In this document: positions 47,698-56,595 of the stretch, in pieces | Layout of the letters: the number at the start of each line of letters is the position of its first letter | Position numbering within the stretch: position 1 is the stretch's first letter | DNA from: Chlorokybus atmophyticus | Lineage: Eukaryota > Plantae > Mesostigma and Chlorokybus algae | Direction of reading: 5' to 3' | DNA: 64,000 nt | Assembly (NCBI GenBank): GCA_009103225.1 | Contig: RHPI01001616.1 | Span: 560,731-624,730 of the forward strand | Notes under the pieces: generated by a model | Databases searched by the model: none | What the model was told of the DNA's origin: nothing | What the model saw: only the letters and a program-made list of their open reading frames with translations | Translations under genes and position numbers: made by a program

Positions 47698-49646
47698 CTA
47701 ACCACTAAATGAACAAATGTCCGTTTGCCTCGCGCGTGTTGTGTTGACGTCCGATGCGCGCAACATCTTGGCAATGATGCGCTGCATGACTAGAGCATCA
47801 CGTGGTGTGAATGTGTATGCATGGTCATCAATGATCACTTGTAGACGGCTAGCTATCACACGAGCTTCTTGTAGCGGAACGCACGGTGGGGGAATGTTGT
47901 CAACATCAATGTCGTCGAGATCCTCTTCCTCCATCGTGGTTGAGTCGGGCTCTGTCACCATCTCCACCAGCTCCTCCACACTCAACTCCGCCTCAACTTC
48001 ATCTTCTTCCACCAAGTTGACATACTCTTCCGCCGTCAACTTATCTTCAATGTCGAGGCAATCAATGAGTGCAGCGAACTCGTCGACGTCCTCCTTTTCC
48101 AGGCGTGTTGCGGATCGCTCATCGGCCTGACGAATGTCGGCGTCCCATGATGCTGGAAGAATCCCCGCCTTTCTGCAGCAATTGCGAATGGTTTGTTGCT
48201 CAACCGATTCCCATGCACTCACTGCCCAATACAAGACTTGCTTGATGTTGGCTTTGAGGTTTGAGACTTGGGTGGAGGCCTCCTCACTTTGTGAAAGCAG
48301 CCACTCAACCAGCAACTTCCTGTATCGAACCTTGAGGCACGCGATGATGCCTTGATCTAATGGCTGAATCTTGGAGGTGGTGTTGGGAGGGAGATACACC
48401 AGCGTCACATGTGTAAACCTCGCAACGTTCAGCCCATGAAGCTCTCCTTTCTCTATATGAGCGTCCGGCAAGATGTGACTTGATGCGTTGTCCAGCAGCA
48501 GCACAATGTGCTTCTCCGCCATTGACATGCGTACATTGAGCTTCTTCAACCATTGTAGGAAGAACTTGGTGGTCATCCATGCCGAGGCGTTGTTGTAGTA
48601 GTCCACAAACTTGTGGATTGAAGTGGATTGAAGATGTTGCTAAAGCAGCGTGGTCTTGCATATTTGTGAATGAGGACGATGCGTTCCTTGCATGTGCCAT
48701 CTACATTGACGGCGAAGCCCAGCGTGACGCGCTCTTTGCACTTCTTTCGGCCTCGCACTTGTTCGGTGGCCAATGTGCGGTCTGGTGTTTGTCGTATTTG
48801 CAAACCAGCCTCATCAAACTTGTATGTGGCTTTTCTGGCGTTGCACCAAGCTCGTCCAGGACCAGCGGCAACTTCTCTCGCGCCCTGGCGACCCCTTTTT
48901 CGTCGGCATCAACGGATTCACCTTGGTATTTGAAGCATTTGATGCCATGCCTGACAACACAACATGCTCAGTAGCAAATCTTAATGATACACGAGGTAGC
49001 CACCACTCCAACACATGCCTTACCTTTTCTTGAACTTGTCCAACCAGCCGGAGGACGCCTTAAACGCTGCCTCGTCAATGTGCATCTCATCTCTTATCTT
49101 AATGGCTTGTCCAGTCAGCATGACATCCGAGATGTCCACATTTGCATTACGCTTCTGCAAATGTTGACATAGCACATTCAATTGGCACGTGCATGCAATT
49201 GTATGCATGTGCACGCATGAATACGCTTATGCAATATGCAGTCAGCAACTGGCAGCACAAGAGTAGTGACTGAAAGTGTATGCAAGTGTGTTGAAGTGCA
49301 TGCATGTACACGCATGCATGCAAGTGTGCAATCAGCAAATTGCAGTAAGAGACTATCAAGTACTCACTTGTTGAAATTACAAGAATAATGCTTGCTCTAG
49401 GCGCTCATAGCGTGCACTGCGCTCTGTCATTTTAGCTGCTGCATGCTTGTTTGCCTTGTCAACTCCTAACCATTTCTTTTTGCCTTGAAGGATAACGGAC
49501 AGGGTGTTGCGCTTGATTGCCTTCTTCAACTTGTTGGTGGCCTCCTGTGCCAGCCTGTCGTGAGAGTAGTCTGGATACTTGTCGTGCAACTCACATATTT
49601 GCTTTTTCTCTAGCGCGCTCAGATGCACGCACTTCTGATCTGCCAT
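47698..49646 (-). pseudogene. pogo transposase (CENP-B-type HTH domains + DDE_1), two introns, inactivated
   Basis: Exons 49646-49368, 49154-49024, 48950-47698. Motifs: LSALEKKQIC, RYERLEQALFL*FQQ (W replaced by stop at 49377-79), FKASSGWLDKFKKRHGI, FDEAG, KERVTL, NASAWMT, LLLDNASSH, LPPNTTSKIQPLDQGII (DD44D spacing by my count). Frameshifts near 48830 and 48620 (CTTCAATCCA duplication). Confidence 0.93.
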
Positions 49647-50978: not shown

Positions 50979-53306
50979 ATGGCCAGCATGGCGGGCATGG
51001 CGTCGTCGTCCACGGCGGCCTTGCTGGCCCTACCTGCAGCCTTGAGTACCAGTACCGGTTGTGCTCGTCGCAGCATTAGGTCCAGGAGTAGGAATGCACC
51101 TTCGCCGCCCACCACCTCCACCATCACGGTGTGCTCCAGCAGCAGCTCGTCCAGCAGCTCGTCAGCTGCCGGCCGTCGCCAGGCTCTGGCGCTGTTTGCT
51201 GGCGCCGGCGTCGCCGCCGCCACGTGGGGGAGCCATGCCACAGTCGCACTCGCGGACGCAATGTGAGTGCGACTGTGCTTATCTGTTTGCAAACTGGCAG
51301 TGAGAGTGAGCTGCAGAATGCAGTAACAGTCACCTTCACAGGCCTGTTGTGGGTTTGCAAGATTTGACGGAAGAGGCAGTGGAGGAAGCAGGAGGAGGTG
51401 GAGGCAGCGCCGGTCCCACTAAGGTGTGTGTGCTCTGTGCTCTCACGCATGCATTCATGTGTTTACGGGAATGCGCATGATGGACAGACACGCGCAAGCG
51501 ACAGTCAGCGACCAATTCGCTTGTTAAGAAACTACGTCACATATTCTTGCACGTGTGTGTGTGTGTGCGCGTGCGCGCGCGCGCGCGCATGCGCGCTAGT
51601 GCGTGCTCTGGGTTGGACGCGTGCATATGCGCGCGCATGCATGCGCAAAAACACGCGCGCAAAAGTGCATATATCCATGTGCACGCGTCCATCTTGAAGC
51701 ACTGAACATCAACACGTCACCATTCCCGCTCTTCAATCGTTGTCCGCACGTGCCGTTGTGTTTATGTGATGATGGACAGACATGCACTATTACTCAGCAA
51801 CCAAGTCACACTCGTTGATGAAGACAGTGTCAGATGCGCGCGTGCTTCTGGGACCCGTGAGGACTGGGTTCCAAGTCATGCATGAGCACTGCTTTGCAGT
51901 TGATGCGTGCTCTTATCGGCACACATGCACGCGCACGTGTACTCGCAAGCAAACGTGTGCATGTGCGCACCTCAGAGCACCCAACTCTGCACTGCCACCC
52001 ACCCACACTCTCACTCGACTAGAACACGTCACTCAACGTCAGGTCTTTGTCGCCGGCGCCCGCGGCAACCTCGGCGCCCGCGTCGTCAGACAACTCCTCG
52101 CCCGCGGCGTCTCCGTCAGAGCCGGCGTGCGCGACATCGCCAGAGCGAAAGAGACCCTCGGCGAAGACCCGAAACTAGAGGTGAGGGTGAGGATATTGGT
52201 TAATTTGACGATGGTGGTGTGATGGTTGGTCCTGTGTGTAGTATGTTGTGGCGGATGTGACGGAGATGGAGGCGCTGGCGAAGGCGGTGGCGGGCGTGGA
52301 TGCGATCGTGGTGGCGACGGGGGCGAGCGGGGGGAACGTGTTCCAGCAAGCCTACAACGTCGACTGGATGGTGAGACACATCACTTGATTATCAGTATCT
52401 TCTTACTGGTTGTTTGTTCTGCTTATGGTATGTTGTTCTACTTTGTAACCTTCCTCTTGTTGTCGTACTTGTATCGTTGTTGTTGTTTTTATCATTGTCA
52501 GGCCTGTAGCTCTGTCGATCGGCCCCCCCCATTGCACACTTGCACACGCACGTGTACAAGCAACACACAGACCCTCACTCACACCCCACCCCAATGCTCT
52601 AATATCCTTTGTCCCAGGGCACGAAGAACCTGGTCGACGCGGCCAAGGCGTCGGGCGTCCCTCGTCTGGTCCTCTGCACGTCGCTGCTGACGAACGGGGC
52701 GGCGGTCGGGCAAGTGCTGAACCCGTCGTTTATTATACTGAACCTGTTTGGGGGGATACTGGTGAGTGGTTAGTTGTGGGATGTGGGAAGTTCACTGTCG
52801 TTTCGTTACACCACGTGCGTGTGCACACGCACACGCACGCGCACACGCATGCGCACACTCTTTGCTTGTGTGTCAGTTTTGGAAGCGGAAAGCTGAGGAG
52901 TATCTGCTCAGCTCTGGTTTGGACTACACAATCGTGCGGCCAGGCGGCTTGAAAAAGTAAGACATAGCGAGCAACACGCACGCACTTGCAGTTGTGAGCA
53001 TCAGGCATGCTATCTCATCCACATTGACTGTGCTTGTTGTTGTCTCAGCGACCCGCCAGCAGGTGGCATTGTGGCCACGAGTGCCGACAAGACCTTCGGC
53101 GGGAGCATACCACGCGACCAGGTACACACTCCTTCTTCACCACATACACAACACGTGTTTCCGACAACAACACTCCCCTATACCAGGTCGCTCAGGTGAT
53201 GGTGGAGGCGCTGTTCACCCCGGAAGCCAGCAGGAAGATCATCGAGATCGTGGCGACGAACGAAGCGCCGAAAAGGCAGGTGGCGGAGCTGTTCCAGGCG
53301 GTGTAG
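50979..53306 (+). CDS. Plastid NAD(P)-binding Rossmann protein (NAD_binding_10; At2g34460/TIC62-N-like), multi-exon
   Basis: Transit peptide, then VFVAGARGNLGARVV, VRAGVRD, DAIVVATG, VDWM|GTKNLVDAA, TSLLTNGAAVGQVLNPSFIILNLFGGIL, KRKAEEYLLSSGLDYTIVRPGGLK, GSIPRDQVA, KIIEIVA. The spliced frame is consistent. Confidence 0.9.
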
Positions 53307-53889
53307 GTGGTATTGTTGTGTGTGTTTGTGCATACTATTGTACGATATCTTCTCGGTATGAGCGCTGGCAGTGTGTAACAGTACTGGAAGGTGTATCCAA
53401 GGTGTCCACATGCATGACATGGATCGTCCGTAGTTACGCATGCGATAACACCAGCCAACACTTCACGCGCGCATACAAGTGGGAAGAAGGAAACATGACA
53501 TCAGGCATACAGCTTGGGGTTGCTTATCACGTCTGTGAAGGTGGCTGTCATGTGAGTACACACTGTGAGCTTCAGCCTCAGGCTCGCAGTAATATTGTAT
53601 GCATTACACTGGCTGGCTTTGCACTGTGTGCTAGCCAGGAAAAATAGTTTCATCCTTTTCTATAATGTACTGTACCTAAACCCCACCTATAGACTTTCTT
53701 TATGTAGCAAGCGTGTATGCTCTGCACATCTCACCTTGTGTTATTGTACAGCATATATCTACTCAGGAACCCCGCGTACTGTAACCAAGTAACCAAGTAA
53801 TAATAATCATAAGAATGAACCACTCCTCATTGGCGCAGCCGCGTGCACACACCGAGTTGTGGGTACACATGTTGTTGTTGTTCTCTCAT

Positions 53890-56595
53890 TTATACGAAAG
53901 TGAAGCCCATGGGCTGAAGCGTGGGAGCACCCGCGGCAGCGCCGCCCGACGTGGGAGACTTCTGACCGTGCTCAATGATGTTGTCGCTCTGGCCGTCAAT
54001 CCACCCCGCAGCATCAGAAGTAGAGGCTGGCACACGAACAACATCAACACAACATCACGATGCCACACAGTTGTTGCTTTGCGCACGCACACGCACGTGT
54101 GCGTGCGCTGGCATGCGCACACATGCACACACGCATGAGAGCGCGCGTGTACACGCACACACACATATATACACATGCCCATTTACATTTGACTCACCGT
54201 TGTTGTTTGGTTTGGCCTCCGTTGGGCTCACGGGCGCTGCGCCGCTGCTGGTGTTGAGCTTGGCCTTGAGCTGGGTGATCTCCATGACCAGTTTCTGGAT
54301 CTGAGCAAGGCTCTGAGTCGCCTGCTCCTCCACGGAACGCACAGTGCTAAGGCCAGAAGGAGCAACCTGGGACACAACAACACAAGGTGAGTCAGACGCT
54401 TGACATTCGCACAGACACGCTCACACGTGCACACACACAGGCACACAAGCGCACGCACACGCATGCGCACGCGCACGCGCATGCACACACGCACAGATGC
54501 AAGCGCATACAGGCACACGCACGCGCGCACACACACACGCACACGCAGACATACCTGTGCTGTGTTGTTGGTGAGTAGTGCCGGCGCGAGTGGGCTGTTG
54601 CTGTTGTTGTTGCTGCCGTACTCCGTTGCCGTTGGCGCGATGGGGGGCGGCGGGCGCTTGGGTCGGCGCTTCATGATGGCCGTCTCGAGGTCACCACCAT
54701 CATAATCCACACCGAATTCGGGCTTGTCAACATACTCGTGAGCATCTGTGAGACAGATACACGTAGTAAGTGAGCTGAACAGTGCGTGTTAGTGTGTGAC
54801 ACGCACACACACACATACACATACCAATCGGTGGGTCGTTTGGTGATGCGAATGCGATGGTAGCAATCGCCTGCGTCCTCAGGATCCTCACTGCTTCTTT
54901 GCCTTCTTCATTCGCCGTCACAAGCGCACAATCATAGGTCCAATGCGCATTGGCCGCTTGCACCAAGCTCGCGAGCTCATCGAATGAACCCGCCAGGCGC
55001 AAAGTCACATCCAAACGCCTCTGTTGGATTTGCAACTGGACAAAAGGAGCCAAAGACCTCGCCGGGTCGAATAGGAGGACCGTGCGTGGGCCAGGGTTGA
55101 TCATCATGGAGTCACGCTTGTTGGATGATGTTGGTTGAGGCATCATCTGCATGTGCATGTTGGCTGCACTCGGGCGACGTGTGCCTTTGTCGAACGAGTT
55201 GGATGGACGTGCGGTTAATGCGTGCGAGCCGTGTGAGCCGCTACCGCTGCCGTTCTCTTTGTTGGGGTTGACGAACATGAAGGAGTTGCGTGAGGTGTTG
55301 AAAGGATCGTTGCCACCACCGTTGCCAAGGAGATGTTGGGGTGTCTCCACCTCAATAGAGAGTCTTGACATGGATGCACGCGGGGATGCAGCAGGAGAGA
55401 TAAACTCCTCAGGATGGTGATTGCGCATGTTGCGGTAGAGCTCATAAGACGCATCGAGTGTGAACCTATTGCCATGCTTGTCTCTGAAGTTCTGGATGAA
55501 GGCATGATGTCCATCTGAGCCCACTTTAATCCCATGTTGCTTGAGGTACTTCTGTTCAGCACGCCAGAGCTTCCTGTGGTGCTTGGCTACAACCCAACGT
55601 ATGTGCCAGTCCTGGAAGGACCATATGTTTTTGGACACCAGGTCTGCAAACACGTGGCCGATGACGGAGCCCCAATGTGTGATGGCGCCGAAACACTCGG
55701 GACCCAATAAGAACAAGACGGGGAAGCAGGACCAGGAGGAGAAGTAGGAGATGGCCATCCAGGTCACGTACTTCTTGCAGTGGATGGGAACGATGGCGTG
55801 GGACTCACGGAACACCTTGAAAGAAACGAGAGTGAGCAAGAGATCACTACTTGTGGTACAATCTATCAAGTAGTTTAATCAAATGTAGTACAAGATAATG
55901 ATACAAAAAGACGGTTGTACGATTGTAGGGTCACCACAGCTCTCTACTACACCATCACACAGACTGATACACACAGATTGATACACACAGACATACACAC
56001 ACTACAATCTCACCTTGAACACCGTCCAGAACATGTAGGATCCATAGGTGAGTCCCAGTCCGAAGAAAAGTCCCTTGACCCATCCATGTGCAAAGGATGC
56101 AGTGATACCCATGATAAGCGTCCCTTGATTGGAGGTCAACAGAGCCATGGTGGCCTCAGAGTACTCCTCCTTCATGCCGGTGAGGTTGGAGAGTGCAATG
56201 AGCAGCACGGGACAAGTAATGAGCCACTCTCCATAGCGAAGCCATAGGACAAACTTGTGTGTTGGTAGGATGATGAGCCAGGGTGCTCCATGGCCAGCGT
56301 AGAGCTCAATGACGTACTTTGTCGTCTCGATGAAGGCGACGTAGACCACCTCCCAGCCGCATGACTTCTTGTAGCGCTGGTAGGCGAAGAAGACCAGGCC
56401 GAAGATGGTGAGGATGAAGGTGACGTAGATCAGGGCGATGGCGATGGTGTGCTCTGAGTCCGTCCCGAGGTAAGGGTGGAAGGCGTGGTCCGCCGTGGCG
56501 GCGGTGTCATTGGTAGTCGTCGCCGTAGGCGTAGTTGCATGGTCCACCACCGGCGTCGCAGAACTACGGTAGTAGGTGTAGTCGTACAGCCCCAT
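53890..56595 (-). CDS. ChR: Channelrhodopsin (chlorophyte/streptophyte type, MvChR1-like), 689 aa, 5 exons (56595-56014, 55815-54825, 54745-54555, 54366-54198, 54026-53890)
   Basis: CGWEVVYVAFIETTKY, WLRYGEWLITCPVLLIALSNLTGM, MALLTSNQGT, SWSCFPVLFLLGPECFG, DLVSKNIW (retinal Lys256), then a receiver-like domain and the coiled coil QIQKLVMEITQLKAKL. Exon lengths sum to 2070 nt. Confidence 0.96.

Follow-up and report, generated by a model that had tools for sequence, protein, structure and literature searches.

The 64,000-nucleotide stretch of Chlorokybus atmophyticus DNA analysed here (contig RHPI01001616.1; hereafter the window) contains a single copy of a channelrhodopsin gene, located on the minus strand at positions 53890–56595. 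The gene consists of five exons separated by four introns, all of the GT..AG type, and its reading frame is intact over 689 codons, giving a product of 689 residues. The protein has an asparagine at the position of Asp156 in ChR2, the aspartate of the Cys–Asp (DC) pair. The parts of the gene are as follows, in the direction of transcription and with the supporting evidence in parentheses; X1 is a public sequencing run.

Exon 1, 56014–56595, minus strand: ATG and residues 1–194, covering the N-terminal tail and transmembrane helices (TM) 1–5 (open reading frame, translation and Pfam PF01036, E 1.5e-18).
Codon 128, 56212–56214, minus strand: TGT, the conserved Cys of the DC pair.
Codon 156, 56128–56130, minus strand: AAT (ATT on the plus strand), Asn at the ChR2 Asp156 position, counted from the ATG at 56595.
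Intron 1, 55816–56013, minus strand: 198 nt, GT..AG (X1 contig joint 55812/56011).
Exon 2, 54825–55815, minus strand: residues 195–524 and the first base of codon 525, covering TM6–7, a basic post-TM7 stretch that Mesostigma ChR1 also has, a disordered linker and most of a receiver-like domain (Pfam PF01036, E 1.4e-9; PDB alignment with TM6–7 of C1C2/ChR2).
D252 codon, 55642–55644, minus strand: second counterion, in exon 2.
K256 codon, 55630–55632, minus strand: Schiff-base Lys, in exon 2.
Receiver-like (‘con2’) cytoplasmic domain, 54699–55083, minus strand: residues 439–540, split by intron 2 (profile iteration).
Intron 2, 54746–54824, minus strand: GTATGT..CAG, phase 1 (X1 depth pattern).
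Exon 3, 54555–54745, minus strand: residues 525–588, the end of the receiver-like domain and a Pro/Asn-rich linker (X1 piece 54556–54746).
Intron 3, 54367–54554, minus strand: rich in GTGTGC-type simple sequence (X1 joint 54367/54556).
Exon 4, 54198–54366, minus strand: residues 589–644, with a heptad-like helical stretch, EEQATQSLAQIQKLVMEITQLKAKL (X1 piece 54198–54367).
Intron 4, 54027–54197, minus strand: 171 nt (X1 joint 54026/54198).
Exon 5, 53890–54026, minus strand: residues 645–689 and a TAA stop at 53890–53892 (X1 piece 53700–54026).

The contigs of run X1 sit on the exons and skip all four introns, introns 1, 3 and 4 explicitly and intron 2 by depth; the channelrhodopsin gene is therefore transcribed and spliced as modelled. 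Exon 1 ends at a GTGAG donor at 56013 and is spanned by X1 contigs at 56011–56120 and 56124–56386. The joint across intron 1 has a 9-letter ambiguity that permits placement at 55815/56014, where the intron ends read CT..AC on the plus strand. At intron 2, X1 depth is zero from 54746 to about 54832 within a contig that has a depth of 10.6 on either side. The 3’ untranslated region reaches at least 53700. At position 55221 the window has C and X1 has G, which changes codon 393 in the disordered linker (A393P); this mismatch is seen in a single contig (depth 4.3) and may reflect variation between strains or an error. Because X1 differs from the window here, it is independent of the data from which the assembly was made.

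The sequence-only reading had placed an Asn at the DC-gate position, and the AAT codon is there on the minus strand at 56128–56130. The presence of Asn156 in this channelrhodopsin gene is a confirmed, real observation. The codon is covered without differences by contigs of two public runs from two studies, X1 (56124–56386) and X2 (56127–56304). The residue numbering on which the reading relied also stands, since a phmmer alignment joins residues 44–192 to residues 44–192 of ChR2 (PDB 6eid) without gaps (E 2.4e-37). Every residue that it had listed was correct: exon 1 carries E82, V83, E90, K93, E97, G101, R120, E123, C128, A134, N156 and T159, and exon 2 supplies D252. Locally, the motif TSNQGT corresponds to the TSDQGT of Cymbomonas- and Tetraselmis-type relatives after one G-to-A change.

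Asn is rare at this site, and a check of its frequency found it in none of the named, characterised cation channelrhodopsins sampled. Column 156 holds Asp in 29 of 32 cation-channel clade representatives, Cys in two (the Chrimson pair) and Leu in one. In 70 further 90%-identity clusters, a set that includes CoChR, CsChR, BsChR1/2, CnChR2, NsChR, HdChR, AgChR, Chronos, SdChR, TcChR and the C1V1 chimeras, Asp occurs in 66, Cys in two, and Val and Asn in one each. The single Asn belongs to a sequence of an anion-channel-like type with Gly123 and Met159. Pooled, about 95 of about 100 clade clusters have Asp156, and because Asp fills the column in both sets (29/32 and 66/70), N156 is not a chance feature. 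Asn156 is common only in the other half of the family, where it accompanies Gly or Ser at position 123. Apart from the Chlorokybus protein, the Glu123-type sequences found include just one with Asn156, the 87-residue product of a 1-kb metagenome contig (P0043/L004). Positions 1–1033 of that contig hold pieces of a green-algal-type channelrhodopsin with E123, C128, A134, N156 and M159, together with a CA-rich intron and an exon edge, ARYFEWLITC, that is present twice.

The other substitutions singled out at the same time, E83V, E101G and H134A, turn out to be typical of the lineage. V83 is found in 49 of 105 representatives and A134 in 20 of 105; V83, A134 and W264 are common to Mesostigma ChR1 and both Cymbomonas channelrhodopsins, and G101 recurs in other members. 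The inner gate thus reads V83/A134/W264, compared with E83/H134/H265 in ChR2.

Homology searches place the protein in the green-algal family. The best phmmer match of the exon 1 product among PDB sequences is C1C2 (E 8e-39), followed by ChR2, and a one-residue deletion in the TM5–6 loop makes ChR2 D253 and K257 equivalent to D252 and K256. A HMMER search covering 1.84 billion cluster representatives returned 195 relatives, none above 58% identity. Its neighbours with names are two proteins of Cymbomonas tetramitiformis, ChR2, Tetrabaena channelopsin 1, Chrimson and Mesostigma channelopsin 1. A tree of 77 representatives, obtained by a quick search with SH-aLRT support and without bootstraps, places the protein within a 36-row clade of green-algal cation channels (SH-aLRT 100) as sister to Mesostigma ChR1 (MvChR1; SH-aLRT 95). 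This position fits Chlorokybus atmophyticus as the sister lineage of Mesostigma.

Most of the residues that characterize the family are retained. The microbial-rhodopsin domain PF01036 is recognized in the products of both of the first two exons, and K256 aligns with ChR2 K257. The counterions E123 and D252 are present together with R120. In TM2, E82, E90 and E97 are kept and V83 and G101 are non-carboxylate; the central gate is T63/E90/N257. Not all five glutamates are required, since MChR1, an established channel, likewise carries only three of them. The hallmark that is missing is the Asp of the DC pair, where C128 is accompanied by Asn at 156. This pair is not strictly defining, because Chrimson also has no Asp at the site.

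In the layout of the protein, the 7TM rhodopsin domain is followed by a basic juxtamembrane stretch, then by a disordered linker, the receiver-like domain and, last, a helical tail, which is the full canonical architecture of the family. Neither Pfam nor a BLASTP comparison of the C-terminal parts with Tetrabaena ChR1 detected the receiver-like domain; profile iteration and a fold search alone revealed it. By profile iteration, this con2 domain follows the 7TM part in many channelrhodopsins, including MChR1 and Tetrabaena ChR1. The AlphaFold2 model of its MChR1 counterpart (pLDDT 88.7) has PhoP/CheY receiver domains as its best Foldseek matches. A receiver-like con2 domain of green-algal channelrhodopsins was described by Rozenberg et al. 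(2020). The heptad-like stretch in exon 4, EEQATQSLAQIQKLVMEITQLKAKL, suggests coiled-coil character from a reading of the sequence alone. Its fold, its key residues, its phylogenetic position and its domain layout put the protein in the family of green-algal cation channelrhodopsins.

The retinal pocket is close to that of ChR2. W124, T127, C128, L132, T159, G163, G181, L182 and G185 are as in ChR2, as are F219, W222, F225, P226, F229, S255 and K256. Apart from position 156, the departures among the listed sites are the conservative changes I131L, I160L and A186S. From this comparison, N156 is the one outstanding, functionally notable change in the pocket. The loss of D156 occurs in a ChR2-type pocket that keeps T127, C128 and T159, as in the engineered slow and step-function class.

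Published work on this site provides the basis for a functional prediction. In ChR2, helices 3 and 4 are joined by the C128–D156 pair, whose Asp is considered to act as the Schiff base's internal proton donor (PMC6158191, PMC9271052). The D156A mutation lengthens the off-time ~20,000-fold in ChR2 and 5,000–6,000-fold in C1C2-type chimeras (PMC4366085). D156N was put into slowChloC and iChloC to stabilize the open state, and iChloC has a decay time constant of 5.3 s; as the sequence-only reading had stated, its changes are E83Q/E90R/E101S/D156N/T159C (PMC4595828). Phobos-CA is greatly slowed by either D156N or D156C (PMC9271052). Mesostigma MChR1 has Asp at the site, as had also been stated (D175); its D175A mutant shows slower current decay, and the authors concluded that the bond connecting helix C to helix D is needed for proper gating even in so distant a member (PMC3119535).

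These mutant effects make a slow-closing channel the most likely reading. It is plausible, although at somewhat less than an even chance, that the Chlorokybus protein is a light-gated cation/proton channel whose closing is markedly slowed and whose sensitivity to integrated light is correspondingly high. On this account, the protein would bind retinal and act as a light-gated cation (Na+/H+) channel that absorbs in the blue-green. Schiff-base reprotonation, and hence channel closing, would be slowed by orders of magnitude relative to ChR2 or Mesostigma ChR1, and the outcome would be a long-lived open state with high sensitivity to dim, integrated light. A slow channel may be better suited to a mostly non-motile, subaerial alga than fast phototaxis signalling. 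Chlorokybus zoospores are not known to have an eyespot. A bolder version, possible but on the doubtful side, makes the protein the first step-function-like cation channelrhodopsin of natural origin: for want of the Asp156 proton donor it would stay open for seconds or longer, perhaps with switching by two colours, and through it a mostly non-motile, subaerial, early-diverging streptophyte might integrate dim light instead of steering its swimming.

A number of points weigh against the slow-channel reading. Measured against the clade consensus, nine of 52 columns that are at least 85% conserved are altered (G113H, R148A, D156N, A167S, T188M, A192V, Y196F, G235C and L266I), and with G235C the GPEGFG motif between TM6 and TM7 loses its otherwise invariant Gly. 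This count equals that of Chrimson, exceeds that of Mesostigma ChR1 and is level with the most deviant members; the changes may reflect rewired gating, changed function, relaxed constraint or loss of conductance. The 1.84 billion representatives contained no close orthologue (above 58% identity) from which conservation of N156 could be shown. In natural anion channelrhodopsins the site is Ser, and there S130A has little kinetic effect (PMC9271052). Chrimson, with a natural Cys, is not a step-function channel (PMC6158191). Closing of KnChR is made about 10-fold faster by basic residues shortly after TM7 (PMC7902849), and the Chlorokybus protein has a similar basic stretch, because of which truncated constructs could mislead. 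Finally, a homologue from another streptophyte, Coleochaete, yielded no channel current (PMC8406140).

Another reading is a functional cation channelrhodopsin that closes in the ordinary millisecond range, its Schiff base being reprotonated by some other path and its gating independent of a C128–D156 link; Chrimson (P0022) is the precedent for such gating. There, C170A, at the C128 homologue, has minimal kinetic effect, restoring Asp at the natural Cys198 (C198D) nearly abolishes the current, and the authors infer a different gating mechanism (PMC6158191). In the Chlorokybus protein, the other altered conserved positions could compensate for N156, and the KnChR-like basic stretch could accelerate closing. 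Nevertheless, T159 and an otherwise ChR2-like pocket are kept, unlike in Chrimson (M201), and in MChR1, the closest characterised relative, removal of the Asp slows decay; millisecond closing is therefore judged fairly improbable. It is unlikely as well, although it deserves more weight, that the gene encodes a weakly conducting or non-conducting photoreceptor or is under relaxed constraint, with light sensed and any signalling passing through the cytoplasmic domains. The nine altered columns are compatible with such a loss, several core chlorophyte homologues have, like that of Coleochaete, shown no channel currents (PMC8406140), and both C147A and D175A strongly reduce expression and current in MChR1 (PMC3119535). 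Yet the 689-codon frame is intact across four introns and the gene is transcribed and spliced, and the Lys, both counterions, R120, E82/E90/E97, N257 and the pocket aromatics are all retained.

The remaining alternatives were rejected. An anion channel is suggested by the neutral V83, G101 and N156, which echo the E83Q, E101S and D156N of iChloC (PMC4595828). However, the key ChloC change, E90R, is missing; E82, E90, E97, E123 and D252 are all kept, whereas in natural anion-type relatives from green algae position 123 is Gly or Ser. Among the cation channels of the clade V83 and A134 occur commonly, and the protein sits inside that clade beside the cation channel MChR1. The sequence-only reading, which had noted the retention of E90 and both counterions and considered anion selectivity less likely, is borne out on both points, and this explanation is very improbable. 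Still more remote is an Asn codon produced by an assembly or sequencing error or representing a rare allele. The covering contigs reach codon 156 only 2–5 letters from their ends, X1 has a 3-letter hole at 56121–56123, and X2 may be the assembly’s own source; against this, two runs from two studies match the window at all letters covered at the codon, and the mismatch at 55221 marks X1 as independent data.

Introns 2–4 consist mostly of GTGTGC/CACACG-type simple sequence (54137–54180, 54508–54555 and 54790–54831), and unrelated high-depth contigs of runs X2–X4 fall on these stretches. Runs X3 and X4, from the same study as X1, match the gene (likeness of at least 90%) only on intron simple repeats and on no exons, and provided no orthologue. 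Around the gene, an open reading frame of 302 residues with a DDE_1 transposase domain (PF03184, E 7.7e-27) lies on the minus strand at 47698–48606, about 5 kb downstream. A multi-exon NAD(P)H-binding/NmrA-like gene, assigned from weak PF13460/PF05368 matches in three exon pieces, occupies about 51950–53300 on the plus strand and is convergent with the 3’ end of the channelrhodopsin gene. The segment 58000–59000, some 1.5 kb upstream of the start, is AT-rich (GC 0.32, versus about 0.5–0.6 around it).

No publication linking Chlorokybus with a channelrhodopsin was found in the literature searched. One survey lists only a histidine-kinase rhodopsin for Chlorokybus, the 2020 catalogue of green-algal channelrhodopsins, for which the 1KP transcriptome was the sole Chlorokybus data set screened, has no channelrhodopsin entry for it, and the Chlorokybus genome paper does not mention rhodopsins. 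The gene would thus be the first channelrhodopsin noted for this lineage. It adds a new member to a known family, one in which a mechanistically central site has undergone a rare natural substitution, and it is a worthwhile, cheap candidate for expression, but it does not so far amount to evidence for the unusual photoreception that had been suggested. If closing is indeed slowed, then a substitution employed by engineers for slow, highly light-sensitive optogenetic actuators already exists in nature, in a scaffold that selection has shaped. The protein would then offer a new backbone for optogenetic tools, and its N156D revertant a clean natural test of the DC-gate/proton-donor model. If the channel proves fast or silent, it is merely one more divergent family member. 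The finding also bears on the role of channelrhodopsins in algae that seldom swim.

Among known channelrhodopsins, Mesostigma viride MChR1 (593 aa; PMC3119535) offers the closest comparison. The two proteins share Val, Ala and Trp at the E83, H134 and H265 sites, the post-TM7 motifs (HHRKL... and SYELYR...HPE) and the receiver-like domain. The exon 2 product is 41% identical to MChR1 over 162 residues (BLASTP E 4e-36), while the 7TM part is only about 40% identical. MChR1, a fast, red-shifted channel, differs in having Asp (D175) at the DC site, Ala at the E97 site, Glu at 101, Cys at the T159 site and Trp at the N187 site, where the Chlorokybus protein has N156, E97, G101, T159 and Y187. Two Cymbomonas tetramitiformis proteins (P0001 and P0008) are among the most similar over TM1–5 (48% and 45% identity), but they keep the Asp, with TSDQGT in place of TSNQGT. 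The streptophyte cation channelrhodopsin KnChR (Klebsormidium nitens, PDB 9j7w; PMC7902849) comes from a non-flagellate terrestrial alga, and its closing is tuned by cytoplasmic basic residues. It is a more distant match (E 2.4e-33, compared with 8e-39 for C1C2), with the DC pair intact and a C-terminal region that is FimV-like.

Chrimson (CnChR1, PDB 5zih) resembles the Chlorokybus protein as a natural green-algal cation channelrhodopsin without Asp at 156, but it belongs to the chlorophycean branch and has Cys at 156, Met at the T159 site, a rigid red-shifted pocket and DC-independent gating. The metagenomic fragment P0043/L004 combines Asn156 with E123 as here, but it is only 87 residues long and has Met159 and few TM2 glutamates. 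With ChR2 and C1C2 (PDB 6eid and 3ug9), the Chlorokybus protein shares gap-free numbering over residues 44–192 at 43% identity; relative to ChR2 it has T63 and F70, and the N-terminal Cys pair is missing. In the DC-gate mutants built on such scaffolds (D156A/C/H/N; slowChloC, iChloC and Aion), an engineered Asn156 lengthens the open state, whereas the Asn of Chlorokybus is natural. On paper, the Chlorokybus protein resembles an engineered DC-gate mutant.

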